From IMG/VR virus record IMGVR_UViG_3300018891_000001, positions 62,001-126,000 of that record: a DNA stretch of 64,000 nt; one strand, written 5' to 3'. The number at the start of each line of letters is the position of its first letter. The stretch's first letter is position 1. The translations under genes were made by a program, and so were the position numbers. The notes under the pieces were generated by a model, which worked only from the letters and a program-made list of their open reading frames with translations, had not been told where the DNA came from and did no database searches. This document shows positions 1-30,884 of the stretch, piece by piece.

Positions 1-1
1 G

Positions 2-3000: not shown

Positions 3001-3133
3001 CTGGTTGCCAGGAGATAACTATTTTATTAATTTCCAAGTAGGAGATCCATACTCAAAGATTCCAAATGGAGAACGACGTTTACCGGGAGAGGCATATGAA
3101 GCTTTGCATGAACTTCATCCAGATGAGACTGGT
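2..3133 (+). CDS. Exon 1 (5'-partial) of a giant virion-associated protein, possibly tape-measure-like or ejected; joined to 4340-6184 after intron removal
   Basis: The frame is open from base 2 (ANTIPGGLLHLRD...), so the track start at 26 is not the true start. It ends ...ELHPDETG at GGT 3131-3133, followed directly by group I intron structure. The tape-measure-like call rests only on size and position upstream of the hub/baseplate genes. Confidence 0.7.
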
Positions 3134-4339
3134 AAAATATTTGCCTGTCTATAAACATGGCACGAATTGCTGGAAACCCCTTAGAGCCTTGCGAGCTACA
3201 ACGGAACCGGTAACGGTAAACGTGAATGCTTGAAAATCGCAAGGATTGGGCAATCAGCAGCCAAGCATCTCTGGAAACGGAGATGAAGGTTCAGAGACTA
3301 TCGAAAGCTCCTACTATATCTCACCCTGACGAAACATGATATAATGGAGCAAGTAGAGTTATTTTACAGTGATGTAAAATAACGGCGTGCCATTAATTGC
3401 AAGGAGGATGTGTATAATGAAGTCATTGCATCAAAATAAAGAATGGTTAGAAGAACAGTATTCAAAGTATGGGACATCAACAATAGCAAAAATGGTCGGA
3501 AGAAATGATAAAACAATACAATATTGGTTGAAAAAGTTTAATATACCAATGCGAACAAGAAGTGAATCAATGAAAATAACCGAAAATCGCATTCATACTG
3601 TTGATGTCGATTATTTTAAAGAAATTGATACGGAAGAGAAAGCATACTTTTTAGGTTTTCTTATGGCTGATGCGAATTTATCAATCAGAACTGATAATAA
3701 ACATGTAGAAACAAAAAGCATAGATTTGACCATTCATAAAAGTGATGTTGAAATATTGATCAAATTAAAAAATGCAATTAAATGTAGCAATGAAATTAAA
3801 CCAAAAGGAAACAATATGAGATTAGCAATATATAATACACACTTTGCTGATAACTTGATTCATTGGGGTATTGCTGCAAATAAAACAGGGCATGAAGTTT
3901 TTCCAAATATATCCGAACATTTAAAGCACCATTTTTTAAGAGGATACTTTGATGGTGATGGATGTATTACTTGGAGTAAAAACGGGAGACTTCGAGGTAA
4001 AGTTCATTTTGTTAGCGGATATGAAATGATGAAAGGTATTAAAGATTTTATTGAGAGCAAAGGTGTACAGTATACAGATAAATCATTGCATCCTAAAAAG
4101 GGAGCAAATGCTTTTGAATTAGAAACAGCTACATTGCCAAATATAGCAAGAATATATGACATAATCTATAAAGATGCTACTGTTTTTTTAACCAGAAAGA
4201 AAAAACATTTTGATGCATTTATGGAGCAATATATTAATTCTCCTATTGCAATTAAAAGATATAGTCCGACCTTATACCGAAAGGTATAAGAGGCAAGCAG
4301 AAATGACTTGCCCCTCCTTTATTGGAGAGTAACAATGTG
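3134..4339 (+). mobile_element. Group I self-splicing intron (probably subgroup IA) with endonuclease ORF in loop L8
   Basis: P1: exon ACTGGT pairs with intron GCCTGT, with U.G at the splice site. P3 is ATGGCACG 3157-3164 / CGTGCCAT 3386-3393. Core elements: P AATTGCTGGAAA 3165-3176, Q AATCAGCAGCC 3252-3262, R TTCAGAGACTA 3290-3300, S AAGATATAGTCC 4256-4267. P7 is GACTA/TAGTC with bulged A3295. P8 is TAATTGCAA 3394-3402 / TTGCAATTA 4246-4254. P9 is CTTATACC-GAAA-GGTATAAG 4271-4290. Terminal G at 4339; P10 is exon-2 AAATA with intron TATTT. Splicing restores the frame (ETG|KYG). Confidence 0.93.
3417..4289 (+). CDS. Intron-encoded LAGLIDADG homing endonuclease with N-terminal HTH-like region
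   Basis: Two LAGLIDADG-like motifs (YFLGFLMADAN and HFLRGYFDGDG) and an N-terminal HTH-like segment (TSTIAKMVGRNDKTIQYWLKKFNIP). AAGGAGG at 3401-3407 favours ATG 3417 over the track GTG 3387. Confidence 0.88.
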   Translation: MKSLHQNKEWLEEQYSKYGTSTIAKMVGRNDKTIQYWLKKFNIPMRTRSESMKITENRIHTVDVDYFKEIDTEEKAYFLGFLMADANLSIRTDNKHVETKSIDLTIHKSDVEILIKLKNAIKCSNEIKPKGNNMRLAIYNTHFADNLIHWGIAANKTGHEVFPNISEHLKHHFLRGYFDGDGCITWSKNGRLRGKVHFVSGYEMMKGIKDFIESKGVQYTDKSLHPKKGANAFELETATLPNIARIYDIIYKDATVFLTRKKKHFDAFMEQYINSPIAIKRYSPTLYRKV

Positions 4340-6184
4340 AAATACGGAGCTTTTGATAAATTTAAAATTTTGGCAGATGTGGCTCCGTGGAGTGATGAAT
4401 ATAAATTCTGGAGTCAATATCTCCTAGATAACTTAGAAGATCCGGAATTGCGACAAGAAGCAGCCGAAATCCGCAGACAAGTCTCCATGCGGAAACAAAA
4501 ATATGATTTTCAACCATACCGATTTAAAGGACAAAATCTCGTATATGAAGAAGTAACTGTAAAAAAGTTTTTAGATGATTACACGTTTTTAACTGAAGAA
4601 TTCGGAGATCAGCCAATCCGAATTGCCGGAGTAGAATATCGCAAAAAAGCATCAGGAGTACTGCAAAATTACTTCCAAGAAGGAGACAAAGTGGTTATTG
4701 GAGTTGCCGCTGATCCAACGCAACGAATTGCTAATGACACTTACGGAACGATGCGAGCCGTTATTTTTAATGAATTAGGAAATATCAATCAAGATATTAT
4801 TCGTCGTGGTCGCATGGTCGAAAACCTGAATGATTTCTCTCCTGCGGGCGTGCATGCTCGTTTTACTCCGGAGGAAATTCGAAGAGGGGCACGATGGGAA
4901 ACAGTAGCTCATGCAAGTACACCATTGAATACCAAGTTCTTGCAAGTGCGAACCGCTTTAGAGGAATACGAACGAGATCAGATTTATGGAAAAGACTGGG
5001 CAACATGGGAAAACTTCATGCTAAGTGACTATGTTATCCCAACCTTGCAAGGATTAGGACGTTTTGATAGTCCATTGTGGTCCATGGCAGCAGGAGCCGT
5101 AACCGGACTTGTTCTTGGTCGCTTCTTTTTACGAGGAGGCCGACCAACCAAAATTGCTGCAATATTAGGAGGATTGTATGGTTTAGGCTCTAATTTCTTC
5201 TTTAAATACTATGAAAATAAGCATGGTGAAGCGTGGATTCCAGAGCGTCGAAGAATTGAACATGAAATCAATGAGTATTTCGATATCTTAAAATACCTCA
5301 AATACGAGGGACTCTATCAAAAAGCAAGAGAAGAAATTGCTCATGCCACGGGATATGATATTGAAGATTTGGCTCAATTGATTCAAAACCAAAAAGAATT
5401 AAACAAGCAACGAAAAGAGGAACTGGAGGCAGAAAAGAAACGGCTTTATATTGAGCAGCCAAAAGGATGGGAAAAGCGCAGAGAAGAGATCAATCAAGAA
5501 CTAGAAACAATTTCTTTAGATTGGGAAAATCTCTATTTGCCAGAAGCCTTCTTGCAAGCATTACAGTATCGACAAGAGCGTGATACCACATTATATGCGA
5601 TAGATCCATATGGTGATCGTTTGCAAGTCATGAGAGCTTTTCCGTACAAAGACAAATGGTTCTTTAATGCGTTTGTTGAAGCGAATCAAGAAGAACGAGA
5701 ACGTATTTTGGAACTAGTTCCTGAAAACCAACGCCGGATTTATAAGGCTATTTGGGGAATGGGGCTTGAACCTCAAAAGCCTCTAGAGTATTACATGCAA
5801 AAATACCGAATCCCTGATTGGACTTGGGAAGGCTGGCGACCGGAATATAATTTGGAAGACATTAAAGTCAAAGTAGTTCAAGAATATGGATTAGATTTGT
5901 CTGATTTCAATTTCTGGGAGGATGATGTAGAAGCCTCTCAATACGTTCCAGACTTGCATCCAGATGGAAATGAGTTTAAAGGTGAACCGGCTTCCAACTT
6001 TACTGGCTTTCAAGCATTGCGACAAAATCTGATTCATATTCTACAAGGATATGGCTTGCAAGATGTTCGTGTTACCGTATATCCATCCACTGGCTCTGAA
6101 ACCAATGTTCATTTCACCTATACTGAAGACCGAAGTGAAGAGATTGAAGAACATCTCCGCAAGTATGGAAGCCGATATGTGTAA
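4340..6184 (+). CDS. Exon 2 of the giant virion-associated protein; contains a degenerate SNase-like region and a Gly/Ala-rich hydrophobic hairpin
   Basis: In frame with exon 1 after splicing (KYGAFDKFKILADVAPWS...). SNase-like pattern at ~4547-4815; hydrophobic WSMAAGAVTGLVLGRFF...IAAILGGLYGLGSNFFF at ~5078-5205. Confidence 0.75.
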   Translation, partial: KYGAFDKFKILADVAPWSDEYKFWSQYLLDNLEDPELRQEAAEIRRQVSMRKQKYDFQPYRFKGQNLVYEEVTVKKFLDDYTFLTEEFGDQPIRIAGVEYRKKASGVLQNYFQEGDKVVIGVAADPTQRIANDTYGTMRAVIFNELGNINQDIIRRGRMVENLNDFSPAGVHARFTPEEIRRGARWETVAHASTPLNTKFLQVRTALEEYERDQIYGKDWATWENFMLSDYVIPTLQGLGRFDSPLWSMAAGAVTGLVLGRFFLRGGRPTKIAAILGGLYGLGSNFFFKYYENKHGEAWIPERRRIEHEINEYFDILKYLKYEGLYQKAREEIAHATGYDIEDLAQLIQNQKELNKQRKEELEAEKKRLYIEQPKGWEKRREEINQELETISLDWENLYLPEAFLQALQYRQERDTTLYAIDPYGDRLQVMRAFPYKDKWFFNAFVEANQEERERILELVPENQRRIYKAIWGMGLEPQKPLEYYMQKYRIPDWTWEGWRPEYNLEDIKVKVVQEYGLDLSDFNFWEDDVEASQYVPDLHPDGNEFKGEPASNFTGFQALRQNLIHILQGYGLQDVRVTVYPSTGSETNVHFTYTEDRSEEIEEHLRKYGSRYV

Positions 6185-6199
6185 AAGGGAGTGGATTAC

Positions 6200-9100
6200 A
6201 TGAATGAACCATGGAACCAAACACCAGAAGATATCCGAGTGAATATTGTATTACCTAAATCAAAAGATTTAAAAGTCGTTGCCGTTTCCGATCCGGTCTA
6301 TTATCAAGACCGGACGGATCCCGAATATGAAAAACGAATTACTCGTCATATTGATTTTCTGAATCGGCAATCGGCAATTTTAGAACGGGATAAAAACTCG
6401 TTGGCTCTTGAAATGCAAGAACTCATGCGTAAAAAAGAGACGATAATTTATGATGGACAACGAGTATATCGCTTGTTTCATTCCTTAAATCAACGACACA
6501 ATCAACAAACTTTAGAGCTATTTGAAGAGTTTTATCGTAGCCTAAAAAATAATCAAAATCATTATATTTTTGATATCGAAACATTTGGAGATGTTCATGA
6601 TCGACAAAAACCATACAGCATTTCCGAGATTTCAATTAATGAATTTGACCGACAAGGCAATTTGGTTCGCAAAGGCTATAACACCGTTTTGCGACAAGAT
6701 CAAAAAACAGTAGATTATTTGCAGCAACTTATTGATGATATTCGAAAAGACAAATATGCTTACAATCGTTTAGAAGATTGGGAAAAACGGAGTCTAGTGG
6801 ATTTAATGCGTTATGCAAGCTATATGAGTGAGTATGATGAACATGCGTTTTCTCATAACCTTAAAACTCAAGAAATCCAACATCATTCCATTATTAAATC
6901 GGTGTTTGACCACCAAGACCAAGTGCATCATGGAAAGGTATTACGTAATATTGACCAATATCTTTTGTATATGCAATCAGGACTTGATTATCTAAAAAAA
7001 CATGGTACACCAGTGCAAACAGCATTAAAACAGATCGAAAAATTATTTCAAGAGAATGCGGATCGTTTTTTCCTTACTTATAACGGGTTAGTCTTTGACT
7101 GGCCAGTGTTAAAAGCTTTTGCAGAAAAACATGGGGTCACTTTGTCATCTATTAAACATCTTGACTACTTAAATGCCATTCGAACCGTATTTTCGGACTC
7201 TGATGTATTAAAACGAAGAATCAATCCAGATTTTCAGCGGAGTGCATACAGTAAAGATAAACTAGCTGCTATGCGTCAAGCATTAAATTTAGAAACACAA
7301 GATGAAGCGCACAACGCACAAATTGATACACATGACACAGCAAAAGTGATAGCTGCTACCTATGAACATCTTCATCAAGAAATCCAAAATTCGAAATTTC
7401 CGATTCGAGAAGGATTCAACTATCATCCTACGTATTTAACATGGAATGATGAGCCTCTTCGTCACGGACAAAAACTATTTGCCATTGGAGGAGCAATGGC
7501 CGTACAAGATGGAGACGAATCTTTCCGAGTGACCTTAGATGAAAATGGAAAATGGGTGCCTGTCACTAATGATTTCAATAAAACCGTCATTAATAGTAAA
7601 ACCTTCTATGAATTTGCTGGTATGCAGAAATTAGAAGAAGGACAGCTGGCATTTCGATTTTTTGATCCAGACCGAAATGAATATGCCTATATTGTTCGTA
7701 GCGGAGAACATGCATTTCAGGAACTGCAAGACTTTGTACAAAGTCGTTTTTACAATTGGGATGGATTAGACCCTCAATATCAACGAGATATCTTGCACGC
7801 TGCTGAAGCAGACCGAGCCCGTCGTCGTTATCAGCGTTTCTTTAGTATGGATGGAGCCGGCAAAGGATTGGCAATTATAGATGGGGAAATCGTCGAAAAA
7901 GGGACAGCAGGTTTTTCTGGCTTAAAACGAATGATTGCCAATGCCGAAATCATGAAAACTCATTTAGAAAGTAAAGGAGCCCAGTATCGTGCCAAAGTAG
8001 AAGAACTCATAGCACAAGGAATGAGTCGAAATCAAGCCAAAAGAGAAGCACGAAAAATACGGGCACATCAATTGCCAAATCACCTAGATTTTGAAAGTTT
8101 ATGGGATGAAAGTCGGCAGAAATACGTTATTAATGAAGCAGAAAGAAAGCAATTCTTTAAAATGTATAAGCGTTTAATCGATGAACTTCCATATCTAAAA
8201 GAGGTAGTAGAAACCATTGATCAAGAATTTGCAGAAGAAATTCAACAAGCAGCTGCTATCAAAGATAACCGAAAACGACGCAGGGCTCTTATGGAGATTA
8301 ATCAAAAACGAGATCAAGCCCTTATGAATTACTATCGATACATGACAGATGCCGTGGGAGAACCTGAACAAGAAAGGACATTAAAAGAATTTGAAAATCG
8401 GCGTTTGGCTTTTTATGACCCGGAAGTAGACGATTATCGCACCTTGGATTTTACCACTGTCAAAAGTGCAAGAGATAGTTTATATCAATATGCTCGACGT
8501 GGCACAAAAGAAAGCCGTAATCAGCAAAAAGTGATGAAAGAGCGGTTAGATTTCCTTTTTCGTAATTTACAAACTCAGCATATCATTACTCCAGGTCAAT
8601 ACTCTTATTACTCCGATGTATTATGGAACACCGATTCGGTATGGCATGCAGCAGGAGAGATTGCTATCAATATGAGACAACGAAATAACGGAAAATATGA
8701 AACTACCTTAACAGAGCCATCCATGATTCAAAATCAAAATATTCAGCAGCTTACCAAAGAACAAAATCGACAGTTTATTCAAAGAGCTATCGAGGACACT
8801 CGTAATGCTCAATTGATTATCAATATGGACTCAGCAACAGGTAAGAAACTGATATTAGGTGAAGAAATAAGAAAAACATTAGAGATTTTGGATCAACAGC
8901 GTTTCTCACGACTAGAACCAAAAAACTATGAAGCATTAGAAGAATTGATTGCAAGTATTCGTAAAACTGATCGTACGAAACAAATTGCATTAGTAATGGA
9001 TACTCATTCTAATGATGGATTAATGAAAGCCTATGTCTATAACGGAAAAGATAGTATAACAGTTCGCAATCAATTAGCTCGAGGAACAACTCCTACACAA

Positions 9101-12100
9101 GCGTTAGAAATCGTCATGCCTTTGATTAATCAGGCCGGCACACATAAAGTAGGAGGCTTGGTATTAAATGCACATAATATAGCTGTTCGAGAAGGAAAAA
9201 ATATCGAGTTAATTTCAAGTGCCCAACATATTGCACGAGGATATGCTGATAGAATGGGATCTATTATGAAGGTATTCAATGAAGGAGATATAGAATGGGC
9301 CAATACACTCGCACGACGTACTCTTCGTAATCAAATTGAAAGCATGTCAGGAATCCAGAGAAATATGGAATTCGGAGAAAACGACACATATGTATGGGCG
9401 CAAAATCAGTCCGACATGTTAAAACAAGCACACGTCAAGCTAGGTAATGCTATGGTAGAAGATTTGTTTTACAACGGCTTTGAAGGTGTGCGACTAACAG
9501 AAAAAGATTTCTACGATCCGGATGATGTGTTTATAGATGACGGACATGGAAACCGAATCTTGCGCAAGGGTGTAACTTTAGAAGATGTAAAAATGGAAAC
9601 CAGCCACAAGATGCTGATGCTCATGCCTAAATGGGCAGAGGAACGGTTAAAGATTCCTTTATTTACATCTTCTGTGAAAGCTGAGCACGTATCCAAAGCG
9701 ATTTTATCAATGGAGGACATTCGCCAACTGATTCCTTATGGTACATTTTACAATCACGGCCGTGATAACGCTGTACAATATATGAATGCTTATCTAATTA
9801 ACTCTCAAACAGAAGAACGTTTAAGAAATATTAAAGGAGTCAGTCGGGATAGTTTATTGAAAACTCCTCGCCAACTAGAATATGAGTCTATTCAGCCTAA
9901 CAAAGTCAGCATGAATATGAGAATTGCTTATATGACGCAAGATGAACTACGTAAACGTGTAGAACAAATGATAAAAGATTCAAGAGGGCAACAACTTCTT
10001 TCCGAATTAGGATTTTTAGATGAGACAGGAAAACTTCAGTATGAAAAACTACCACGACTGTATGAGCAGCAGGGCATTATTGCTAAAGATTTAATGGATG
10101 CGTTAGAAGTCAATAATGAAAAGCGATATGACAAAGGAAAACGATTTGAATTAGAAAAAGGGTTGCAAATAGGTAGCACTATTCAACCAGGTCAGTTATT
10201 AGGATACCGAATCCATGATAATGGATACCGAGAAGCTATACGTTATGAAGGCACCAAAGTAGCCCAGCTTATTGATGGTGTGGAAGAAGGACGAGATTTA
10301 ATTGTACGTTGGCAAACCCAACCATTTAAATTTATGCTTGACGGCGAAAAAATGACCGATTCCCCCGTAGATCGTCGATTTATTGAATATCTTACTGGTC
10401 GAAATGACATTGTAGGGATTATTAACCCAGATGTGGCGAAACACCACGACTTTGGAATGTTAATGTCGGGGGAAGCTAGATTGCTAGCTGAAGAAATTAA
10501 AAAACTAAGCCCATCCAAACAAAAAACCGCTAGAAAAATTATTGAAAATGGTGGTATTGGGCTCAAGTGGAATCAAGAAATGGGCGGGTTCATTGATCAT
10601 AGTTTTGATTTGCAAATTGCTCGGGAACAATTTGATAAAGTATTTGAGCAACTCAACAAAGCCAAAATTCGTATTTCTCCAATAACTCCAACAGGATTGC
10701 GTATGGGTATTTTAGAAGGCCGTATGTCCAAAGTAGCCAATTATAGTAAAGTGATCGACCACAACGGAAGGCAAGTGATTGGCTATGAAGAAGGATATAA
10801 TGCTGAAACTGGCGAATACGAAGTTCGTAAAGTATATGCAGATGGCAGAGATGGAGTACAATGGGGACACCGAGAGATGGGGGTACTAAAGAGCTATGGG
10901 TTAGAGAAAACCTATCAACATGTTCATCAAATTATGTTGGAACAAGCTCAGCAAACTCATCGTCTCCAAGAAACTAGAGCCGTTGCTGAATCATTGCGAT
11001 ATCTGACACATGAGGATCGTATTCAAACAGAGGCATTGAACATAGAAGACTTTGACTCTCTTCCAGAAATGTATCGTAGTGAGAATACGTACAAAGGAAC
11101 GATTTTTGATCGTGAAAAAGTAAAAAGTTTAGTAAGCCAGTATAAAAATCATAATGCCATGAATGAGCATGGTTTCTGGCTAGAATTGCCTTCAGTAAAA
11201 CGTCCTGATGGTAAGCTCGATAAAGTTACGATCCGCATGGACGAGACAGGGACATTAAAAGAAATTGATAAAATCTTTATTCCATTTACGAAACTGGAAG
11301 GGGCACATGGCGATATCCATTTGCGGGATTTGCAAAAACAAATTGCTCGTATTTATGAAAAAGCGGAAGAAGTGCAACGAGCAACCAGTCTTCAAGATGC
11401 ACGAATGGCCCATCAAGAATTGCAGCAAGCGGTTCGAGGATATGTCAAACAATCATTTAAAGAACTCACCTCTTCTAAAGGTATGCTATTTGGAGATGTC
11501 TTTAAAACCCATATGAATAATTCGGCTTCAGGACTTTTTAAACTCATGGATTATCATACGTCTCAAAAAGTGATGGAAAAATGGGGAGAAGGAGAGTACA
11601 CGATTATTTCTGAAGATACTGCCAAGAAGATGGGCATTTACGATCGATTAAAAGCCGGAAACGAATTGTATGTAGCAAATGTCCGTTACCCAACATTCCA
11701 TGATGGAGCCATGCAGTTTACAAAACTCAAAATGGCCGACTGGGTAAAAGAGGGAGAGTTTCATACTACATCCTTTGCATCCATGCTTCAAAATGCAGAC
11801 TCTGACGGAGACTACTCGCATATTGTCTTTGTTGATGATAAAGACATTCAAGAAGAATGGAGAAGGGCACATGATCAAACACGACAAAAATTTGAAGAAC
11901 GATGGAGAGCACATTTAGAAAAAACGGACCCAACACACCCATCATATCAAGAAGCAAAACCGGTAAGTATTCGAGATACGGAAGCAAAGGGAGTAGCTGA
12001 TGAGCAATGGAAACAGTTTGTTTTGAAGCGAATCGGAAACAATGATCAAGAAACAGCATCTAAAATCGGTAAGATGACCATCGGACGAGCTTCCAACTTA

Positions 12101-13105
12101 AACTTATTTATTCGTCAAGTGGCAGACCGGTACTATGCCGATAACCCGGAAATTAACAATAAAATAAAAGAATTTGGTCGGGGACTCGAACAAAAGCTCA
12201 TCGACGCAAAGCACGGAGCTGAACCAGCGGGCTTAAAAATGATTGATGCCATTTATGCAGGAAATTGGGAGAAAGCCTTTGAAATTGATAAGCAATATTT
12301 TGATGGCATGTTCCAAAAGGACTATTATATGAACGTGGTTGCTCAGGAAATGCCAATGGCACTTACTCGAATGAGAGAGGGACTTCGCACAGCAGGCTTT
12401 AAATTTGGAACAAGTACCGGAATCAATGCCAACTATGGAGTTCAGAAGTTAATCGATTTATTATACGGACAAGCAGATCCACAAGAGTATGGGGGAGATA
12501 ATAAAGCATTAGCCATGTGGCATAAATATCTTCAAAGCGAAGGCATGAACATAGATCTTCATGGAGAACAACAAGCTCCTATGCCTATTCAACGATTAAC
12601 AACAACTCCAATGAAAGAGCGAATAGATGAAGGAAAAGGAATATTAAATCGAGCTCGCAATACGTTGAGTGATGCTATTGGAGGAAGTATTTCGGGTGTC
12701 AAAGGGAAGATTAGTCAACTCTTTGATAGTATCCAAAACATGAATCCAAAAACCGCTGCCCTCTTGGGAGCAGGTCTTGCAGTAACGGGTATTGCAGGGT
12801 ACAATATTCTTAACAGTGATAAACCTGTAATGCATTACAATAATGAAAGTCAAGAAAGAAAACGAGAACCTCGTCCGGCTTTGCAAGTAGATATGAATGA
12901 TTACCATTCAACACAAAATGCATCCATTCATATTGAGGCTTCCGGAAGGAAAGTAGGTTCTGATCAAATGTCTCATATGGTGGCTCAAGGAATGAGAGAG
13001 TCCGGCATGAATGCAGGACCAACCCGCATTTCTGTGACCCATCGGGATAATACTCAACAATTAAACCGAGTTTGGTATCGGGATAAAGTACGAGAGAATA
13101 TTTAG
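6200..13105 (+). CDS. Putative virion single-subunit two-barrel RNA polymerase fused to an N-terminal DEDDh 3'-5' exonuclease, with a C-terminal hydrophobic segment
   Basis: Beta-prime-like NVRYPTFH (11678-11701) and NADSDGD (11792-11812). Beta-like YEQQGII, IQPGQLLG, FKFMLDGEK (Lys codons 10328 and 10349) and DIVGIINP (10406-10429). Exo I FDIET (D 6572, E 6578), Exo II YNGLVFD (D 7097), Exo III HNAQID (H 7310, D 7325). C-terminal AALLGAGLAVTGIAGYNIL. RBS AAGGGAG 6185-6191 favours ATG 6200 over GTG 6191. Confidence 0.75.
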   Translation: MNEPWNQTPEDIRVNIVLPKSKDLKVVAVSDPVYYQDRTDPEYEKRITRHIDFLNRQSAILERDKNSLALEMQELMRKKETIIYDGQRVYRLFHSLNQRHNQQTLELFEEFYRSLKNNQNHYIFDIETFGDVHDRQKPYSISEISINEFDRQGNLVRKGYNTVLRQDQKTVDYLQQLIDDIRKDKYAYNRLEDWEKRSLVDLMRYASYMSEYDEHAFSHNLKTQEIQHHSIIKSVFDHQDQVHHGKVLRNIDQYLLYMQSGLDYLKKHGTPVQTALKQIEKLFQENADRFFLTYNGLVFDWPVLKAFAEKHGVTLSSIKHLDYLNAIRTVFSDSDVLKRRINPDFQRSAYSKDKLAAMRQALNLETQDEAHNAQIDTHDTAKVIAATYEHLHQEIQNSKFPIREGFNYHPTYLTWNDEPLRHGQKLFAIGGAMAVQDGDESFRVTLDENGKWVPVTNDFNKTVINSKTFYEFAGMQKLEEGQLAFRFFDPDRNEYAYIVRSGEHAFQELQDFVQSRFYNWDGLDPQYQRDILHAAEADRARRRYQRFFSMDGAGKGLAIIDGEIVEKGTAGFSGLKRMIANAEIMKTHLESKGAQYRAKVEELIAQGMSRNQAKREARKIRAHQLPNHLDFESLWDESRQKYVINEAERKQFFKMYKRLIDELPYLKEVVETIDQEFAEEIQQAAAIKDNRKRRRALMEINQKRDQALMNYYRYMTDAVGEPEQERTLKEFENRRLAFYDPEVDDYRTLDFTTVKSARDSLYQYARRGTKESRNQQKVMKERLDFLFRNLQTQHIITPGQYSYYSDVLWNTDSVWHAAGEIAINMRQRNNGKYETTLTEPSMIQNQNIQQLTKEQNRQFIQRAIEDTRNAQLIINMDSATGKKLILGEEIRKTLEILDQQRFSRLEPKNYEALEELIASIRKTDRTKQIALVMDTHSNDGLMKAYVYNGKDSITVRNQLARGTTPTQALEIVMPLINQAGTHKVGGLVLNAHNIAVREGKNIELISSAQHIARGYADRMGSIMKVFNEGDIEWANTLARRTLRNQIESMSGIQRNMEFGENDTYVWAQNQSDMLKQAHVKLGNAMVEDLFYNGFEGVRLTEKDFYDPDDVFIDDGHGNRILRKGVTLEDVKMETSHKMLMLMPKWAEERLKIPLFTSSVKAEHVSKAILSMEDIRQLIPYGTFYNHGRDNAVQYMNAYLINSQTEERLRNIKGVSRDSLLKTPRQLEYESIQPNKVSMNMRIAYMTQDELRKRVEQMIKDSRGQQLLSELGFLDETGKLQYEKLPRLYEQQGIIAKDLMDALEVNNEKRYDKGKRFELEKGLQIGSTIQPGQLLGYRIHDNGYREAIRYEGTKVAQLIDGVEEGRDLIVRWQTQPFKFMLDGEKMTDSPVDRRFIEYLTGRNDIVGIINPDVAKHHDFGMLMSGEARLLAEEIKKLSPSKQKTARKIIENGGIGLKWNQEMGGFIDHSFDLQIAREQFDKVFEQLNKAKIRISPITPTGLRMGILEGRMSKVANYSKVIDHNGRQVIGYEEGYNAETGEYEVRKVYADGRDGVQWGHREMGVLKSYGLEKTYQHVHQIMLEQAQQTHRLQETRAVAESLRYLTHEDRIQTEALNIEDFDSLPEMYRSENTYKGTIFDREKVKSLVSQYKNHNAMNEHGFWLELPSVKRPDGKLDKVTIRMDETGTLKEIDKIFIPFTKLEGAHGDIHLRDLQKQIARIYEKAEEVQRATSLQDARMAHQELQQAVRGYVKQSFKELTSSKGMLFGDVFKTHMNNSASGLFKLMDYHTSQKVMEKWGEGEYTIISEDTAKKMGIYDRLKAGNELYVANVRYPTFHDGAMQFTKLKMADWVKEGEFHTTSFASMLQNADSDGDYSHIVFVDDKDIQEEWRRAHDQTRQKFEERWRAHLEKTDPTHPSYQEAKPVSIRDTEAKGVADEQWKQFVLKRIGNNDQETASKIGKMTIGRASNLNLFIRQVADRYYADNPEINNKIKEFGRGLEQKLIDAKHGAEPAGLKMIDAIYAGNWEKAFEIDKQYFDGMFQKDYYMNVVAQEMPMALTRMREGLRTAGFKFGTSTGINANYGVQKLIDLLYGQADPQEYGGDNKALAMWHKYLQSEGMNIDLHGEQQAPMPIQRLTTTPMKERIDEGKGILNRARNTLSDAIGGSISGVKGKISQLFDSIQNMNPKTAALLGAGLAVTGIAGYNILNSDKPVMHYNNESQERKREPRPALQVDMNDYHSTQNASIHIEASGRKVGSDQMSHMVAQGMRESGMNAGPTRISVTHRDNTQQLNRVWYRDKVRENI

Positions 13106-13110
13106 GGGGT

Positions 13111-16100
13111 ATGCTCATGTCATTCCAGCAATATATTCCCTATGGGGGATTGCTTGAGCATCACTTACGCATAGGGGACACGATTTTTTACGTGCCCCCT
13201 ACTGCTATTAGTGTGCATCGTCAAATGAAAAATCAACGAATATCTATTTTACGGGCACGCAATAGTTTGCCAGTAGAATCCGGTTATTTTGACCGGGTCA
13301 TTGAATTTACTTTGTTCTTTCCGGATATTGAATCCATTAATAACGAGCTCCGTCCTTTATTGGCTCAGGTAAAGAAATGCCCGTTTCTTCCGATTGAAAA
13401 TACGTATTTGAATGATATTCATAAAATTGAAGCCGTTACGATTGTAGGAGTTACTGTACAAACCACTCCAGGATTCCCTAATACGCTTCAAGCTCAAATT
13501 CAATGTTATGCCTTTGAGCCGGCAAGTTATATTGCGGATGAGGATGACCGAACGTTTGACGAAATGTTTGACTGGCCACTATTCCGTTGGTATTACAGTC
13601 GAAATTTAGATCCTCAAATCGGAAATATGTTTCACACGTATTTTGAACCTTTGTATGGAGAGTTGGATCATTCTTTTAAATTTCGGATTGCCGCTATGGA
13701 TGATTTAGATGCGATTGCCGCATGGAGAAAAGAAAAGAAAAAACTCATTCGAGATTTTCTAAGAGAAACCCGGGAAAACTTTTGGGGAAATGAAAAACGA
13801 GAAGAAGAATTTCATCAAAAATATGACAAGCTATATCAAAAAGCCATGTTTGAGTACCAGCTTCATTATGAAGATTGGAATCTTCCGGGACTTGTTTTAA
13901 CAGACCTATCTATTGGTTTTGAAAATAATATCGCATCCTTACAACTGCAAGAAGATGCTTCTCCAACTCATCAATACTTAGGTTCACAAGATACGATTTT
14001 AGTAGCCCGTTTTCAAACCGATAACATAGAAACCATTGCCGAATTAGAAGCTCTTGTCAATCGAGCCACGTATATGACTCGCACTTATCATAAAGAGGTA
14101 TCGAATGGATTTTTAGAGTTTGATCACCCGTTGGCTCGATTATTTGGTGTGCGAAATGTTACGATCGAGGATATGCAAACTAATACGATTGAAGGGTATC
14201 CCGGAGCACATGAAGTTGTTTTAACGATGATTGCCTATAACCGAGCAGAACGAAAATTAAATGAGGTACAATGGCTGTCAGAAACGGCTCAATGGGATAT
14301 TAGCAAATATGAGGAGCTTTCTTTATTAGGGATTTTTACAGATTTTGACCTTGGAATTTCAGAAGATTATCAAGGTTCGGATATCATCATGGACATGCCT
14401 CTTATTAGTCCATTTGCACGTTTTGTACGGTTTATGTGGGATCGCCCAATGTTTGAACAGATGTTTTTAGGTTTGAAAAACTTTTTAGCCGGGCATCACA
14501 AAACACCTGCTGATTTAGATCAAGAAGGAGTTAAACGTATCATTTATGATGAATCCATTAAACAATTTTTCCGAGCAGCTGAAGTGTATCCCGATTTAGA
14601 GCTTCCGACATATGCAGAAGTAGCTATGGCAGGATTTCATGTGGAAAACACAAACGATGGCGTGTTTGTTGATCCAGACTTTTTCATTAAATATAAAAAA
14701 GGAACTCTATTTTGGGAAAATTTATTAAAATCCATTGAGCAAAATTATCAGGTTGTGTTACGAGATGCTTTAGGCGGAGAAGCAGTCGTTCATGGTGGTG
14801 AAATTAAAAATATCAATAAAGTAACCAGTGAGCAAATTCAAAAAGGAAAAAAGGACTTCCAAGAAGCTTCTGGTCAACAGCAAATGGATGCTTCTCCAAT
14901 TGCAAAAGATCTCATCGATACGGGCAATTTAAAAAAGGAACAAATGGAAGCTTTGATTCGTCAGAAAGCTCAACAGTTTGGTTTAAATCAGAACTTCCCT
15001 TTGGCTTTTGCTCGTGCTATGGATGAGGAATTAAAGCAGTTTTATGATAAAGGAATGAATGCGAAACAAGGAAAAGTTGTTAATCGTAACAGTAGTGCAC
15101 CTGTTATGATGAACAATCACTTTGAGTTTTACACGAATCCTGATGGAACCATTGACGGTGAGTATATTGGAGTGATGAAAGTTCGACGTTTATATGGCTC
15201 CAATGTGAATTTGCTAGGAAAAAACATCGAGTACAATGTGGAAACTGGTATCCGAAAAATGGCCGACTTTTATGCTGAATTAGCTCGTATTCATGCGAAT
15301 TCTGCCAATGGAGGCAAGAAAATTTATAACGAACAATACGTTTACGATTTGTTTGGTCTAAAAAATAAAAGAGGCACATTTGATGTAGAAAAAGCACGGT
15401 TTGCCGGAGTTGTCATGTTGTATCTTGGATTTGACCGAGAATATATGGCACTTGTTAAAGATAATAAACGACCACCACGGCAAATTGTGCAATTGGTGCA
15501 AAAAGTTTTGGATAACGTAAAAAATGAAGAACAATGGACTAATCAGCAAATTCACAATCGGGTAAAGAATTTACCAATCAAAGATTTTAAATCTGTAGGA
15601 ACTCAGGCAAGTGCAGTTACTTCTACCACGAGTGCTTCTTATGTAGATGATAATAATCAAATTTATAAAGGCATGCTTCATGATATGCTGCGTTATGATA
15701 AACGAGGTCGATTGGTTCGAGCATTCCCAACATTTTTCCTTACTTTTATTGATGAGGGTCAATATATCGGAACTATCAAACTGTCCGATCAATTTTTTCA
15801 GTATAAAGCAGTCATGGATATCATGTACACCAATAATCGAAAAGAAGCATCAAGTACATTAGTCTTAGAAATGTCTAATATTTATGGGACTTTAGATGAT
15901 GCCGAAAAAGGAATGGATTTAACTCACACAGGTTACTCAGAAGTCTTTAAAGCCATGACACTTCCGGGAGCTGTAACACGGGAAGCAGAGCGTTCCCGTC
16001 ACCGAAATCCAAATTACTATAAATCGATTATGCTTCGCACTGGGACTCGTATTCATTTTCGAATGGGATATGGCTCTAATCCAATGGAAATGCCAACAAT

Positions 16101-19100
16101 TATGAATGGTACCATTACCTCAATTACAAATAATAAAGAATCCATTACGGTCATTGCACAGGATGACGGAATCGAATTAACGAATAAAATCCGGGCTGAT
16201 GTGAACGAAACAACAGACGGAGGATTTCTTTTTTCTAAGAAAGAGCCTACCGAAATTGTTGATGAATTATTGACGGATTCCCAGGGATTCTTTAGGAACT
16301 TGTGGGCCGGATTATCAAACAAAGAATTTGAGAATCACAGTCTTGGAATTATGCATTTTGGTAGTCAACAGCAGCCACAAGGATGGGCACAATTACAATC
16401 CTTCTTGGGTGGTATCCCGGTAGGAGCTGCAGCTGGGATTATGGGAGGAGTGATCGGTGCTATTGCTGGATCTCTTTCCGGAGGACTCTTTGGTGGTGTA
16501 CTCGCTGGAAAAGATAGTCGTACCATTGGGGAAATCAATATGAATGTCTATCAAACGACAGGGCTTACTAATGAAGAACATGATCAGTGGTGGACGAAAA
16601 TCAAAGATGCTTTTGGTATTGGGAAAGCGGATGAACCCGGCATTAATATCAATCTATTTGATAAAAGTGTATGGGATGTCTTAAATATTTGTGCTTCTGT
16701 TGGAGATGATCATATCGTAGCGGTGCATCCATTTGGATTCCGTAACACTATCTTTTCTGGAAAACCTTATTTTCCGCTTCATTATGACTATATCGTGGAT
16801 GCTAAACAAGAAAAAGTGCTAGGAACAGCGGTCAAACCGTTTCGACAGTTTCATGTGTATGATAGTGCTACCTCGATTTTAGATAACAGTATTGAAGCAA
16901 CAGAAGAATATATACGAACAGTAGCTGTAGGTGTATACATGAATGAAGGGGAAATGGATACCACCTCTCCTATTTTCGTGGACACAAACATTTGGCCAGA
17001 AAAACAACGAGTTGTTAATATTGATACGACAATGAATGCGCAAGGAGTGCGGTTGATTCAGCATATTCCTCTCATTGGAGGACTATTAAATAAGCCATTG
17101 AAATGGTACTTCGATGAAGGAGTAGCAATTAAAATAGCAGCCGCTGGTTTACGAGATTATGTCAAAGACATGTATGATGGATACTTAACCGTTATGGGGG
17201 ATCCAAGTGTTAAGCCTTATGATCAAATGTGGGTTTTTGATACGTATAACGATATCGTCGGTCTTGCAGAAGTAAAAGAAGTTACCCAAATCATGAATCA
17301 CCAAATGGGATACATCACAATGATCAAACCGGATGCAGTGGTTGTTAATAGTGACCGGCGAGCTATGGGATTTGCCATGACACTCCAAGCCATTGCCGGA
17401 AGTGCCCTAATCACATATGCTCTGCGTAAAAAATTGAAAACATCTAAATATGCAGGACATCTTCCTATTTTAAATGCAGCGTGGGCAGCGACTCAGAATC
17501 AATTTGATCGATTGAAAGAGCGTTTTCAAACCAATCGGGTAACTAAAAAGTTGTATGATACTCTAACAGGAAAACGACCATCTAATGAGAACGATATTTT
17601 ACAAAAGGAATCTAAACGAAAAAGTGTGCGAGCAAAAGCAGAAGATGTAGCTCGATGGGCCAAAAACGGAATGTTGAATCAACTAGAAAAATGGACCGGA
17701 GAAAAAGCTCGCAACAATCTTGAGGAAATTTTGAGAAACAGTCGGGAATTTGGCTATAACACCTTTAATCATCTTCGATTAAAAGAAAAAATCACTCCTC
17801 TTTTAACAAGTGGAAGTCGAAAGCTTCGAAAACTCAAAGGAGTCGGGGAATATGCACGTATGGCGTGGGCAGGAACTCATGCTGCAGCAGGACCAATTGG
17901 ATGGATTGCTTTTGCCATTGAAGCTTTAGTGATTCATTTAATTACTGCCACTGTAGCAGAATTTATTGAGCGATGGCTCTTTACAAGGCAAGCTGTCATG
18001 ATTGCTCCTCTTATCAAAGGAGGATTGGAGTTCACCGCAGGAATTAATGGTCATAAAGGATCAGTGATTGGAGATCCCCCGGACTTTTGGCAAAGATTTA
18101 TGACCAACGAATTTTCCGCTGTTTTACTAGGATTTTTTGGAGTGGATGCATGGAAGTATCGCCAAGATTATGTAATGGAAAATGATCTTCAAATGCAAAC
18201 AAATTCCTCTGTTTCTCGTATCAATGTCAATAGTATGGCACAAGATTTATTGCAGCATTTTCGGAAACAACCACGGAACGTACCAGAATTGCAACACTTG
18301 TATGAAGAGGATCGCAAAGCAGCATTAGAACAAGTCAACCGGCGTTTGGCATTACTAAATTCTCGATACACCAAAGCTGTTCACCCAGAAGAAGAAAAGA
18401 GTTGGGAGGAATGGAAAAAACAAATCGGGGATTGGTTTTCAGACCTTTGGGAGCAAATCAAATTACTTTTTGGTGGAAAAGATGATGGACAAGTTTGTAT
18501 TCCAAAGGGAGATGTGCCAACCAACGGAAAAGCCGTGAATCTATCCAAATACTTTAGTGTGATCGGACCAAAAATTGAAGAAGAATGTAAACGTCAGGGA
18601 TTAAGTCCTTACGCAGAAATTCTAAAAGCAAAATGTATGCAAGAATCAGGAGGAAACTACCTCAAATATCCGGATGTTATGCAAGCATCAGAATCATTAG
18701 GAAAACCAATCGGATGGATTAAAGATGTAGATTTATCCATTCGTCAAGGTGTGAAATATTTTGGTGAGATTATTAAGAAATGTAATGGAGATATTAAACT
18801 TGCCCTGCAATCATACAACTACGGAAAAGGCTTTATTGATTACGCCATGAAACGAGGAGGCAAATATACACCGGAATTGGCATGGTCGTTTGCTGAAGAA
18901 ATGGTGAAGAAATATGGAAGAATTTCACGTATTCCTCCGGGATATGGAGACTCAAAATATGTTGAACGAGTACTTCGTTATTATCAAGGGGATCTTCCAA
19001 GTGGGGAATGTGAAAATGCAGTAGGCAATGGTCCGGGTGGAGCAAGTTCATGTCCATCTGTAACCGGAAGAGAGGGAAAGAGAAAATATCAAACAAGTGG

Positions 19101-26014: not shown

Positions 26015-26032
26015 TGACAAGAGGTGAAATAC

Positions 26033-28015: not shown

Positions 28016-28018
28016 GAA

Positions 28019-29833: not shown

Positions 29834-29845
29834 GGGGTGTGACAG

Positions 29846-30871
29846 ATGGATGTGGTATCCTATGCTAAATCAATTAAAGCAAAAAAACGTATTCAACAAT
29901 TGCAAAATCGGCTAGGAATGAATGGCACTGAACAAGGAAATGATGTGCGAGATGTATATGAGAGTGTAAAGCAACGCTTAGAGACTCTTGAACAAAAGAG
30001 TCCTAAGATGGCTTTATACAACCGTGTTTCAGAATTAGAAACAAATACTATTATTAACTTAAACAAACATAATTTGCATGTAAACTCTGTTCTAAATCAA
30101 AATAAATATCAATTCATGGAGTTAATGTTTGATGATTTTGCCGATGATAGCGGCATTGATGCTACGAAATCTATTTCTTATGTTTTTGATTCTGTAAATC
30201 GTCGAATTCAAATTGCCAATGGTCAAACCCAGGCGATTGTTGTAACAACTGCTGAAAATACAGTAAATATTCCACGCATGATTACGGTATCTCAAGTCTT
30301 TAATAAACAGGCAGTAGTGCAAAAACCTATTGATCTAAACAATGGAACACATGTTAATACTGAAATAATCAATGGGAAAATTCAATTGCAATTTCGTCAC
30401 ACAGAAGATCAATATGTTCCGTCAGGAATTTATGAAACTCCCGTCATTGATTTTGGAGAAAACACAAAACAAATTTTAAAGCTTCAAACTTCTATTTATA
30501 TCCCAACAGCATCAGCTAATCAAAACAAAGCGGAAGTATATATTTACACATCTACTTCTCCTGATAACCAAACTTTTTCTGATTGGCAATTACTGAATCC
30601 AGATGGAACCATCGCATCACCTGCAGGAAGATATCTTAGAATCAAAATTGAATTGAAAGCAGAAAGAGAACAAGAACTTAATCAAGTCAATACATCTGTA
30701 GAATACGATCCCTCCAAGGTCATTGTGGTCACTGATAACTATACTTTAAAGGATCAAGATCGACTATTAAAATTGGTATATAACATTCTTGATACCATGC
30801 CAATCGAATATGATGCTACTAAAATTCAAAAAGGTCTGGATTACTATGTATTGCAAGGTAATGTTCAATAA
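29846..30871 (+). CDS. Fibre adapter-like protein, paralog of 26033-28015 without the discoidin inserts
   Basis: The N-terminal ~165 aa are highly similar to the 26033 product (MDVVSYAKSIKAKKRIQQLQNRLGMNGTEQG... versus MDVLSLAKAMKAKRSIQQLQHRLGMNGTEQG...). Confidence 0.75.
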   Translation: MDVVSYAKSIKAKKRIQQLQNRLGMNGTEQGNDVRDVYESVKQRLETLEQKSPKMALYNRVSELETNTIINLNKHNLHVNSVLNQNKYQFMELMFDDFADDSGIDATKSISYVFDSVNRRIQIANGQTQAIVVTTAENTVNIPRMITVSQVFNKQAVVQKPIDLNNGTHVNTEIINGKIQLQFRHTEDQYVPSGIYETPVIDFGENTKQILKLQTSIYIPTASANQNKAEVYIYTSTSPDNQTFSDWQLLNPDGTIASPAGRYLRIKIELKAEREQELNQVNTSVEYDPSKVIVVTDNYTLKDQDRLLKLVYNILDTMPIEYDATKIQKGLDYYVLQGNVQ

Positions 30872-30884
30872 GGAGTGATGAAAA

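Follow-up and report, generated by a model that had tools for sequence, protein, structure and literature searches.

Can a cell-type (two-barrel) RNA polymerase be hidden within a giant protein of a phage tail module, and if so, is it likely to be delivered with the virion? An earlier note, made from sequence alone, had raised this possibility for a 2301-residue protein encoded next to the baseplate hub of a Bacillus-type jumbo phage, citing four beta-like motif sites followed by two beta-prime-like motifs in the order expected for single-chain enzymes. We examined this gene within a window of 64,000 nucleotides (positions 62,001 to 126,000 of IMG/VR record IMGVR_UViG_3300018891_000001) and found that the proposal is largely supported, with the fold being predicted and virion delivery and catalysis being inferred.

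Gene architecture and motif conservation

The ORF 6191/6200-13105 (+) is intact, and its likely start is the ATG at 6200, which follows a GGGAG Shine-Dalgarno sequence and gives a protein of 2301 aa. The features of the locus are as follows, with residues in ATG numbering.

1..6184 (+), upstream neighbour, a gp145-like giant virion-protein gene split by an intron with a homing endonuclease
6200..13105 (+), the whole gene, encoding an exonuclease, a middle region, a two-barrel RNAP core and a C-terminal anchor, in that order
6500..7399 (+), DEDDh (DnaQ-fold) 3'-5' exonuclease-like domain, about aa 101-400
7397..9649 (+), middle region, about aa 400-1150, globular alpha/beta domains of unknown function
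9647..12439 (+), two-barrel RNA polymerase-like core, about aa 1150-2080
10052..10459 (+), beta-like barrel region, aa 1285-1420
10853..10900 (+), GVQWGHREMGVLKSYG motif, aa 1552-1567, resembling the beta-subunit GGQRFGEMEVWALEAYG motif
11504..11827 (+), beta'-like barrel, aa 1769-1876
12062..12217 (+), helical segment after the beta'-like barrel, aa 1955-2006, KIGKMTIGRASNLN ... LEQKLIDAKHG, a candidate bridge helix with the start of a trigger-like loop
12752..13102 (+), C-terminal anchor, with a hydrophobic segment at aa 2185-2205 and a conserved terminal stretch (DNTQQLN..WYRDKVRENI)
13111..19554 (+), neighbouring gene, baseplate hub with a lysozyme-like/SLT domain (2147 aa)

All seven motifs named in the earlier note are present where it had placed them: YEQQGII at aa 1288 (nt 10061), IQPGQLLG at aa 1328 (nt 10181), FKFMLDGEK at aa 1376-1384 (nt 10325), DIVGIINP at aa 1403 (nt 10406), HDFG at aa 1416 (nt 10445), NVRYPTFH at aa 1827-1834 (nt 11678, with R1829-Y-P1831-T-F-H at nt 11684-11701) and NADSDGD at aa 1865-1871 (nt 11792-11812), in which the three Asp codons start at 11798, 11804 and 11810. 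For this one sequence, among 5000 shuffles D.DGD occurs in 3.7% and R.P followed 30-50 residues later by D.DGD occurs in 0.22%, which is suggestive but not decisive.

The decisive evidence comes from conservation. We identified 19 full-length homologues at 31-70% identity and 92 clusters at 50% identity, and the four-part architecture is conserved among 71 representatives, with the exonuclease found in 68, the middle region in 63 and the C-terminal region in 58. Across 74 representatives that are each under 50% identical to one another, R1829, P1831, D1867, D1869 and D1871 are conserved in 69/69 and G1870 in 65/69, and nothing else in the 1000-residue module is that conserved except G1962 (65/65) and K2004 (60/60). 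DSDGD is conserved in essentially all homologues as DxDGD, including DFDGD and DYDGD variants. The five invariant residues match five of the eight reported as invariant in all two-barrel RNAPs, namely R, P, three Asp, one further Asp and two basic residues (PMC2919709). The beta-like residues are also conserved, with K1377 in 58/64, K1384 in 60/64, T1386 in 60/64 and E1289 as 54 Glu plus 7 Asp of 65, although the two lysines are 7 residues apart rather than 8 and the fourth acidic residue is Glu rather than Asp.

A predicted two-barrel polymerase core

An AlphaFold (AF2) model of aa 1101-2100 is confident (pLDDT 84.7, pTM 0.79), and Foldseek against the PDB gave 531 matches at E<=1e-3, of which the 50 shown are all beta'/Rpb1 or beta/Rpb2 chains of cellular and viral multisubunit RNAPs at probability 0.98-1.0. 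Foldseek against BFVD returned RNAP subunits of giant viruses and of many large DNA viruses, the best match being a 'minor tail protein' of a gut siphovirus (E 1.5e-20, query TM-score 0.53). In the model, a beta-rich block at positions 191-290 corresponds to the beta-like region, for which matches include the beta/Rpb2/NRPD2 chains 8xmc_B, 8q3i_C, 8wa1_B and 1k83_B. Strands of the beta'-like barrel lie at positions 669-776, with the DSDGD loop between helix 758-764 and strand 772-776, and these are followed by helices at 858-878 and 883-902 and a low-confidence loop at 905-907. The latter segment, in which N1966, Q1998 and I2001 are conserved in addition to G1962 and K2004, aligns collinearly with the IGEITN and QG..ID.AKTG motifs of the gp99/YonO family.

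Sequence profiles support the beta'-like half in particular. The whole-module profile aligns to E. coli beta' at probability 78% and E 1.8e-5, whereas hhalign of the beta'-like barrel to E. coli beta' 376-489 gave E 8.1e-5 and to the YonO-like gp99 family E 3.2e-4, with four collinear motifs. Pfam RNA_pol_Rpb1_2 (PF00623) was the only family hit repeatedly, in 2 of 9 and 7 of 24 members, but always below threshold (best E 0.0014). By contrast, the beta-like part has no significant sequence match to beta (E 0.19-0.21) or to gp99 (E 0.42), although a collinear, non-significant alignment to E. coli beta 1060-1110 was found. The GVQWGHREMGVLKSYG motif, which the earlier note did not list, has family-wide conservation of G1552, G1556, R1558 and E1559 and pairs with E. 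coli beta at about residues 1270-1290, collinear with the two upstream motifs, but again the overall E-value of 0.19 is not significant. Comparison of a 9-sequence profile with the gp99 family gave nothing, as did profile comparison with the P23-45 gp96 RNAP (probability 0.2%). Without a residue-level superposition, we infer that the beta-like barrel supplies K1377 and K1384, and probably E1289, and after a connector of about 380 residues the beta'-like barrel supplies R1829, P1831 and the Mg-binding loop D1867-x-D1869-G-D1871.

The exonuclease domain and tail context

[quoted passage not shown] Its catalytic candidates, D125/E127 (ExoI), N295..D300 (ExoII) and H371..D376 (ExoIII), are invariant in our alignments A1 and A6, and the A6 profile hits the ExoII region of family-B DNA polymerase exonuclease domains at E 1.6e-5. 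An AF2 model of aa 1-1160 matches oligoribonuclease/REXO2, exonuclease I and DnaQ domains at probability 1.0, with target TM-scores of 0.5-0.67. Pfam RNase_H_2 is sub-threshold, and RNase_T is precomputed for relatives. The domain could trim RNA 3' ends, clear oligoribonucleotides or attack host nucleic acid. The middle region is conserved in the family but has no sequence match in the PDB, and no match beyond the exonuclease domain appears among the 50 Foldseek matches shown; its model has pLDDT around 80 and is not a long coiled coil. Residues 1-2100 model as globular, and the protein does not look like a classical helical tape measure.

The gene lies in the slot of 0305phi8-36 gp146, a 'hypothetical tape measure protein' noted in its record as found in virions by mass spectrometry. 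The two parts of the upstream neighbour align end to end with a single 2030-aa ORF in L004, and the order gp145-like gene, this gene, hub is conserved in L004, L010, WH1, KLEB27-3 and 0305phi8-36. The hub matches PHROG 20474 at 2046 bits, has Pfam Lysozyme_like at aa 1820-1934, and is a homologue of 0305phi8-36 gp147 and Moorella MTATph1 CDS0032. The C-terminal hydrophobic segment scores 1.59 in a Kyte-Doolittle 19-residue window, and there is weak collinear similarity to the C-termini of 0305phi8-36 gp146 and Moorella phage CDS0031 (E about 0.01 in a set of eight sequences), in agreement with the positionally biased match reported previously (PMC2147016). As the earlier note had anticipated for automated annotation, the polymerase is not named in homologues, which are called 'hypothetical protein', 'structural protein', 'virion structural protein' or 'ribonuclease H-like domain-containing protein'. 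The isolated relatives WH1 gp095 and KLEB27-3 gp034 are annotated only as virion or structural proteins, labels that may rest on homology rather than mass spectrometry; we found no papers on them.

We therefore favor, with a probability of roughly 0.7, a model in which this 0305phi8-36-related contractile-tailed jumbo phage of Firmicutes probably injects its own transcription enzyme through the tail. In the absence of activity or virion data for this protein, we infer that it is built into the tail and anchored through its C-terminus at the hub, like the gp146 'tape measure' it replaces positionally, that it is expelled ahead of the DNA on sheath contraction, that its hydrophobic segment engages the membrane, and that the polymerase module then transcribes the first DNA to enter, independently of host RNAP. 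It is unclear, however, how about 250 kDa of folded protein would fit in, or pass through, a tail tube. The distribution of phage polymerases is consistent with this model, as 0305phi8-36 has a free-standing YonO-like gp99 and a gp146 that lacks DxDGD, whereas WH1, KLEB27-3 and Edson carry this module and show no gp99-like gene by tblastn.

Alternative readings and related systems

The fused exonuclease leaves room for a two-barrel enzyme other than a DNA-dependent RNAP, such as a DNA polymerase or primase resembling archaeal PolD, which shares both barrels (PMC10770324), or an RNA-dependent RNA polymerase like QDE-1. An exonuclease joined to a polymerase is the usual DNA-polymerase layout, the N-terminal domain matches family-B proofreading exonucleases, and the beta'-like part aligns to the gp99/YonO family, which Pfam files under RdRP PF05183. 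We consider this unlikely, given that the 50 structural matches shown include no PolD, that the exonuclease model fits oligoribonuclease/REXO2 better, and that the exonuclease motif also occurs in 0305phi8-36 gp146 and Moorella phage CDS0027, which lack DxDGD, so that it is not tied to the polymerase; YonO itself, moreover, appears to be a DNA-dependent RNAP. About equally unlikely is an active RNAP that is merely encoded within the tail block and works in the cytoplasm. The seemingly awkward folded size and the lack of a second RNAP in the relatives searched would fit this, since a sole phage RNAP is often non-virion, but the gene is co-oriented and tightly packed with late structural genes, with a 5-nt gap to the hub gene and a 15-nt gap from the upstream gene, and a late-expressed enzyme is only useful early if it is packaged. 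The hydrophobic anchor shared with the virion protein gp146, the annotation of relatives and the tail-protein label of the best BFVD match also speak against it.

More doubtful still is a tail-lumen or tape-measure protein in which an ancestral polymerase module survives only as a scaffold. The gp146 slot (PMC2147016), the presumably functional gp146 without DxDGD, and the freely varying middle residue of DxDGD could be read this way, but, G1962 and K2004 apart, the invariant residues in about 1000 positions are exactly the metal-binding and NTP-contacting ones, a signature of selection on catalysis rather than scaffolding, and residues 1-2100 do not form a long helical ruler. Chance similarity in a long protein, despite the shuffling frequency of D.DGD alone, is refuted by the 69/69 conservation and the independent structural matches to RNAP.

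Among known systems, 0305phi8-36 gp146 occupies the same slot upstream of the hub, has a similar length (2537 aa) and has an ExoI-type D-I-E-T motif and weak C-terminal similarity, but it has no R-x-P...DxDGD and no match to the RNAP-module profile (E 0.34). The beta::beta' fusion NCgl1702 of a Corynebacterium glutamicum mobile element (2169 aa; PMC2919709, PMC7824862) is also a single chain of similar size, with beta before beta', associated with a prophage or mobile element and unannotated over most of its length; a search seeded with actinobacterial-type members of our family found no Corynebacterium protein. The virion RNAP gp66 of crAss-like phage phi14:2 is likewise a large virion-associated protein with a hidden, highly divergent two-barrel RNAP that automated annotation missed, a description that for our protein includes inferred virion association, and crAss 'cr50_1' and 'cr118_1' proteins appear only as weak BFVD matches.

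The YonO / 0305phi8-36 gp99 / QDE-1 clade of single-subunit RNAPs (PF05183) shares a single chain with a beta-like barrel followed by a beta'-like barrel and four collinear motifs, R-x-P, DxDGD, IG..(S/T)N and Q..I(D/S).(A/S)K.G. However, no member of our family reaches PF05183, the beta-like half does not align, the 50 PDB matches shown are all multisubunit RNAPs, the core carries a beta-type G..EM.V..L..YG-like motif, and gp99 is a free-standing 1218-aa early gene rather than part of a tail protein.

Tail-fused virion RNAP is known so far only from Thermus phage P23-45, whose gp96 (PMC10770324) is likewise a giant tail-module protein in the tape-measure slot carrying a single-chain two-barrel RNAP. 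P23-45 gp96 belongs to a siphovirus, its RNAP forms the N-terminal part (by our estimate about 1100 residues) of a 5002-residue tape measure protein, and P23-45 also has a second, non-virion paralogue (gp64), whereas none was found here. In the contractile-tailed jumbo phage lineage, the RNAP instead lies at aa 1150-2080 of 2301, preceded by a DEDDh exonuclease and a 750-residue unknown region, and no long helical ruler is predicted. Nevertheless, the presumed logic is the same, namely delivery through the tail and transcription of the first genes, as has been shown for the P23-45 enzyme.

Genomic context and conservation of the tail-module gene

The window holds an uninterrupted + strand ORF that begins at either a GTG or an ATG, the latter preceded by GGGAG, and we use the ATG start, which gives 2301 aa. 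All seven of the beta-like and beta'-like motifs that the earlier note had proposed for this protein are present where it placed them. In shuffles of this one sequence, D.DGD appears by chance in 3.7% of trials, whereas R.P followed 30-50 residues later by D.DGD appears in 0.22%, and the motif alone is therefore a lead rather than proof. Base composition is uniform at about 37-40% G+C, and all large ORFs are on the + strand. The features of the window discussed here are as follows.

6191 (GTG) or 6200 (ATG) to 13105, + strand: ORF encoding the 2301-aa protein
7397-9649: part of this ORF encoding its conserved globular middle region, aa 400-1150
13111-19554: next gene, encoding a 2147-aa baseplate hub with a lysozyme-like/SLT domain
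3124-4340: insert of about 1.2 kb splitting the upstream gp145-like giant gene, with an intron-like RNA at 3124-3458 and an ORF at 3387-4289
26024-32510 and 36790-41754: run of fibre or receptor-binding candidates

The hub is a clear homologue of 0305phi8-36 gp147 and Moorella phage MTATph1 CDS0032, and baseplate wedge and fibre-like genes lie downstream. The fibre or receptor-binding candidates carry F5/8 type C, CBM96, RCC1-like, PA14 and Big_1 domains and shared C-terminal modules (PHROGs 38477 and 31511), suggesting modular exchange among tail fibre genes. In 0305phi8-36 the order is tail chaperonins, gp145 (1930 aa, virion protein), gp146 (2537 aa, ‘hypothetical tape measure’, noted as found in virions by mass spectrometry) and then the hub gp147. 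The same order of three giant genes occurs in two related loci, L004 and L010, and in Bacillus phages vB_BceM_WH1 and vB_BauM_KLEB27-3. The ORF therefore sits in the gp146 slot, directly upstream of the hub in an order conserved in 5 relatives, with a second giant gene between it and the chaperonins. The window itself is part of IMG/VR contig UViG_3300018891_000001, which is 215,870 bp long.

The insert in the gp145-like gene has a group I intron signature (Rfam RF00028, 39.7 bits, E 2.8e-8) that lies below the gathering score, and it carries a LAGLIDADG homing endonuclease (Pfam LAGLIDADG_3/_1, PHROG 4645). A gathering-threshold Rfam scan of the window returned nothing. The two flanking ORFs align end to end with one 2030-aa ORF in L004, joining at residues 1414/1416, and Pfam returned nothing for the gp145-like neighbours. 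The gp145-like gene of phage KLEB27-3 (gp031-gp033, positions 295-7448 of locus L071) is also annotated in two pieces (1340 aa and 677 aa) with a small ORF between them, an arrangement that resembles the split in the window. In MTATph1, the gene in the gp146 slot (CDS0027-0031, positions 6730-14086 of locus L001) appears to be interrupted by a transposase gene (CDS0028).

Searches of the whole protein against PHROGs, against the PDB by sequence and, by tblastn, against 50,697 phage records found nothing, as did a megablast of 25 kb of the window, and BLASTP against 0305phi8-36 gp145/gp146 and Moorella CDS0026/0027 gave only noise. A word-indexed search nevertheless found 19 full-length homologues at 31-70% identity on contigs of 8 to 226 kb, many of them 204-226 kb, from Bacillus, Priestia and metagenomes. 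Close homologues (P0002-P0006 and P0013, and locus L003) sit on contigs of 188-226 kb in genome assemblies of Priestia megaterium, Bacillus licheniformis, B. atrophaeus, B. subtilis, B. velezensis, the B. cereus group and Oceanobacillus profundus, suggesting jumbo phages or phage-like episomes carried in cultured strains. Scans of sequence collections added more divergent loci at 29-34% identity, including one in O. profundus, although the scan of genome contigs returned a single locus. A profile of aa 1101-2100 searched against 1.84 billion representative proteins found 92 clusters at 50% identity, nearly all of them proteins of 2100-2900 aa with the module in the same relative place, one of them from Rhodococcus; 71 representatives have at least 1800 residues. 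The cultured phages WH1 (gp095), KLEB27-3 (gp034) and Edson have members, and WH1 gp095 and KLEB27-3 gp034 match the family HMM at E 1e-58 and 1e-95, with motifs reading ADHDGD and ADYDGD. The three are annotated as ‘virion structural protein’, ‘structural protein’ and ‘hypothetical protein’, and public records call the proteins of this family hypothetical or structural.

When 74 representatives were aligned to the module profile, the only positions conserved in every aligned sequence were R1829, P1831, D1867, D1869 and D1871 (69/69), G1962 (65/65) and K2004 (60/60), with G1870 at 65/69. R1829 and P1831 lie 38 residues before D1867, within the distance of about 35-45 residues expected between the invariant R-x-P (Rpb1 R446/P448) and the Asp loop. 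The middle residue of DxDGD varies (S, A, F, Y, N, Q, T, M, H), so that canonical DFDGD and DYDGD forms occur in the family, and K1377 (58/64), K1384 (60/64), T1386 and E1289 (54 Glu plus 7 Asp of 65) are also strongly conserved. The residues reported as invariant in two-barrel RNAPs are R and P upstream of the three Asp in the beta'-type barrel, plus one Asp and two basic residues in the beta-type barrel. Five of these are matched exactly here, and the other three have plausible counterparts, with the spacing of the basic residues 7 rather than 8 and Glu in place of Asp.

Profile comparisons and predicted structure

Pfam gives no significant hit. RNA_pol_Rpb1_2 (PF00623, the beta' domain that holds NADFDGD) is the only family hit repeatedly at sub-threshold level, in 2 of 9 and 7 of 24 members with a best E of 0.0014, and in one member the hit covers the R-x-P to DxDGD stretch. 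A profile of 9 sequences gave only noise against PDB sequences and nothing by hhalign against P23-45 gp96 (probability 0.2%) or the gp99 family, and only the 66-74-sequence profile built from the representative search gave signal. With a 66-sequence profile, the beta'-like part aligns to E. coli beta' residues 376-489 at probability 61%, E 8.1e-5, pairing RYPTxH with NRAPTLH (424-430) and ADxDGD with NADFDGD (458-464), and the whole module aligns to beta' at probability 78%, E 1.8e-5. The beta'-like part also aligns to the YonO-like gp99 family of 0305phi8-36 at E 3.2e-4 (probability 39%) with four collinear motifs, including IG..SN and Q..I...KHG against IGEITN and QG..ID.AKTG. Conserved helices follow at aa 1958-1978 and 1983-2002, collinear with these gp99-family motifs. 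The beta-like part never reached significance by sequence (E 0.19 against E. coli beta), although its best alignment to E. coli beta is collinear across three motifs, pairing GEK.T with GDKMAGRHGNKG, I.NP...KH.D.G with DIVLNPLGVPSRMNIG, and GV.WGHREMGVLKSYG with GGQRFGEMEVWALEAYG.

AlphaFold2 on aa 1101-2100 with a 26-sequence alignment gave a mean pLDDT of 84.7 and pTM of 0.79. Foldseek with this model against the PDB returned 531 matches at E<=1e-3, among them largest subunits (beta', Rpb1, A190, phage AR9 beta' fragment) or second-largest subunits (beta, Rpb2, plant NRPD2, plastid beta) of multisubunit RNAPs, at probability 0.98-1.0. The beta'/Rpb1 chains match at probability 1.0, and the beta/Rpb2/NRPD2 chains include 8xmc_B (E 8.6e-7), 8q3i_C, 8wa1_B and 1k83_B. 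The predicted secondary structure shows a beta-rich block at aa 1291-1390 (model positions 191-290) that holds the beta-like motifs, and a second block at aa 1769-1876 with DSDGD in a loop just before a strand, as in beta'. These matches, which were not accompanied by a superposition or a check of barrel topology, are consistent with a beta'-type and a beta-type barrel in the same enzyme.

Against predicted viral structures, the list is led by a ‘minor tail protein’ of a gut siphovirus (E 1.5e-20, query TM-score 0.53), an unnamed protein (E 5e-18) and an uncharacterised protein of the Acinetobacter jumbo phage vB_AbaM_ME3 (A0A172Q021, E 6e-11), followed by about thirty RNAP subunits of giant viruses, ascovirus, nudivirus and poxvirus. 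The gut siphovirus, Siphoviridae sp. ctnpt50 (BFVD entries A0A8S5SD80 and A0A8S5SEF1), has both the ‘minor tail protein’ with this RNAP-like fold and a separate ‘RNA-dependent RNA polymerase’, reminiscent of the two RNAPs of P23-45.

Residues about 101-400 form a DEDDh (DnaQ-fold) 3'-5' exonuclease, judged from sequence motifs and predicted fold, in which ExoI (D125, E127), ExoII (N295..D300) and ExoIII (H371..D376) are invariant. The profile of this region hits the exonuclease domain of family-B DNA polymerases at E 1.6e-5, and the model of aa 1-1160 (pLDDT 81, pTM 0.63) matches oligoribonuclease (Orn)/REXO2, exonuclease I and DnaQ domains at probability 1.0. The 750 residues at aa 400-1150 are conserved and globular, with no sequence relative in the PDB or Pfam and no structural match beyond the exonuclease domain among the Foldseek matches examined. 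The C-terminus has one hydrophobic segment (aa 2185-2205) and a conserved end that weakly but collinearly resembles the ends of 0305phi8-36 gp146 and Moorella CDS0031, in agreement with the report that only the last 60 residues of gp146 align with its positional counterparts (PMC2147016). gp146 and Moorella CDS0027 have an ExoI-type motif but no DxDGD and no match to the RNAP profile.

Inferred role in infection

Taken together, the protein has a predicted two-barrel RNAP-type fold with intact catalytic-type residues under strong purifying selection, is fused to an exonuclease, and is encoded in the tail module next to the hub. We consider the two-barrel polymerase fold highly probable (about 0.95) and an active polymerase likely, and delivery with the virion somewhat less so, although still more likely than not. 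By analogy with P23-45 gp96 (PMC10770324), and from the virion status of gp146 and the annotations of relatives, which are indirect evidence only, we infer that the protein is part of the tail, is expelled on contraction, anchors via its C-terminal segment and transcribes the entering DNA without host RNAP. The main physical difficulty is that the modelled 2100 residues are compact domains rather than a ruler, so that storage in or passage through the tail tube would need unfolding or an unusual arrangement, and the gp145-like neighbour may be the true length ruler. A complementary distribution supports a transcription role. 0305phi8-36 has a separate YonO-like gp99 (PF05183; positions 38030-41683 of locus L016) and its gp146 lacks the module, whereas WH1, KLEB27-3 and Edson have the module and no gp99-like gene by tblastn, and none of 53 gp99-like IMG/VR loci lies on a contig that carries this family. 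The free-standing and tail-embedded RNAPs appear mutually exclusive among 0305phi8-36-like phages, although this evidence is limited because the scans use patterns and whole contigs were not read.

Other readings of the protein fit less well. A classical tape measure is unlikely, since the models of aa 1-1160 and 1101-2100 are compact alpha/beta domains rather than a long helical ruler and the protein has no PHROG hit and no TMP Pfam hit; one of 24 distant members has TMP_3 at E 0.014, and only the position and the C-terminal anchor are TMP-like. A peptidoglycan-cutting DPBB domain of the 3D/RlpA/MltA type, which is common in tail proteins, was rejected because the repeated Pfam signal is RNA_pol_Rpb1_2, the motif is R-x-P...DxDGD, and the structural matches examined are RNAPs.

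More tentatively, and as a possibility we hold at somewhat less than even odds, a whole, so far unrecognised clade of contractile-tailed jumbo phages and phage-like episomes may inject, through the tail, one protein of about 250 kDa that combines a two-barrel RNA polymerase with a 3'-5' exonuclease. Such a clade would span Bacillus, Priestia and Oceanobacillus, reach Rhodococcus, and have structural relatives in an Acinetobacter jumbo phage and a gut siphovirus. In these phages the injected enzyme would replace the free-standing YonO-like RNAP of the sister lineage 0305phi8-36 and would be the phage's only RNAP, and its beta-like motifs suggest an independent, beta/beta'-like single-chain branch of the superfamily.

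Relationship to known two-barrel RNA polymerases

Tail-delivered two-barrel RNAPs are known experimentally from one thermophilic siphovirus, and our result suggests that the strategy is widespread in jumbo myovirus-like phages of Gram-positive bacteria. No paper or record that we could search describes this family as a polymerase, and we know of no other two-barrel RNAP fused to a DEDDh exonuclease. A minimal single-chain enzyme that retains beta- and beta'-type motifs bears on how multisubunit RNAPs, YonO/QDE-1-type enzymes and phage RNAPs are related. A possible earlier sighting of a relative is C. glutamicum NCgl1702, a 2169-aa beta::beta' fusion (PMC2919709, PMC7824862); a search for a Corynebacterium (NCgl1702) relative found none, and the relationship itself could not be tested.

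Functionally, the closest system is P23-45 gp96, which shares the tape-measure slot of the tail module and the inferred mode of action. The protein is nevertheless not a member of the gp96 family, as no profile similarity to the gp96 RNAP was detected and the RNAP lies at aa 1150-2080 with the rest globular, rather than at the N-terminus followed by a long ruler. At superfamily level the protein is, by its predicted fold and conserved residues, a two-barrel RNAP, but it is not a member of the YonO/QDE-1-type family PF05183, to which there was no hit in 35 members scanned, and only the beta'-like part aligns to the gp99 family. Its beta-type motifs and PDB matches lean towards the beta/beta' side, whereas the post-barrel motifs resemble the YonO/QDE-1 side.
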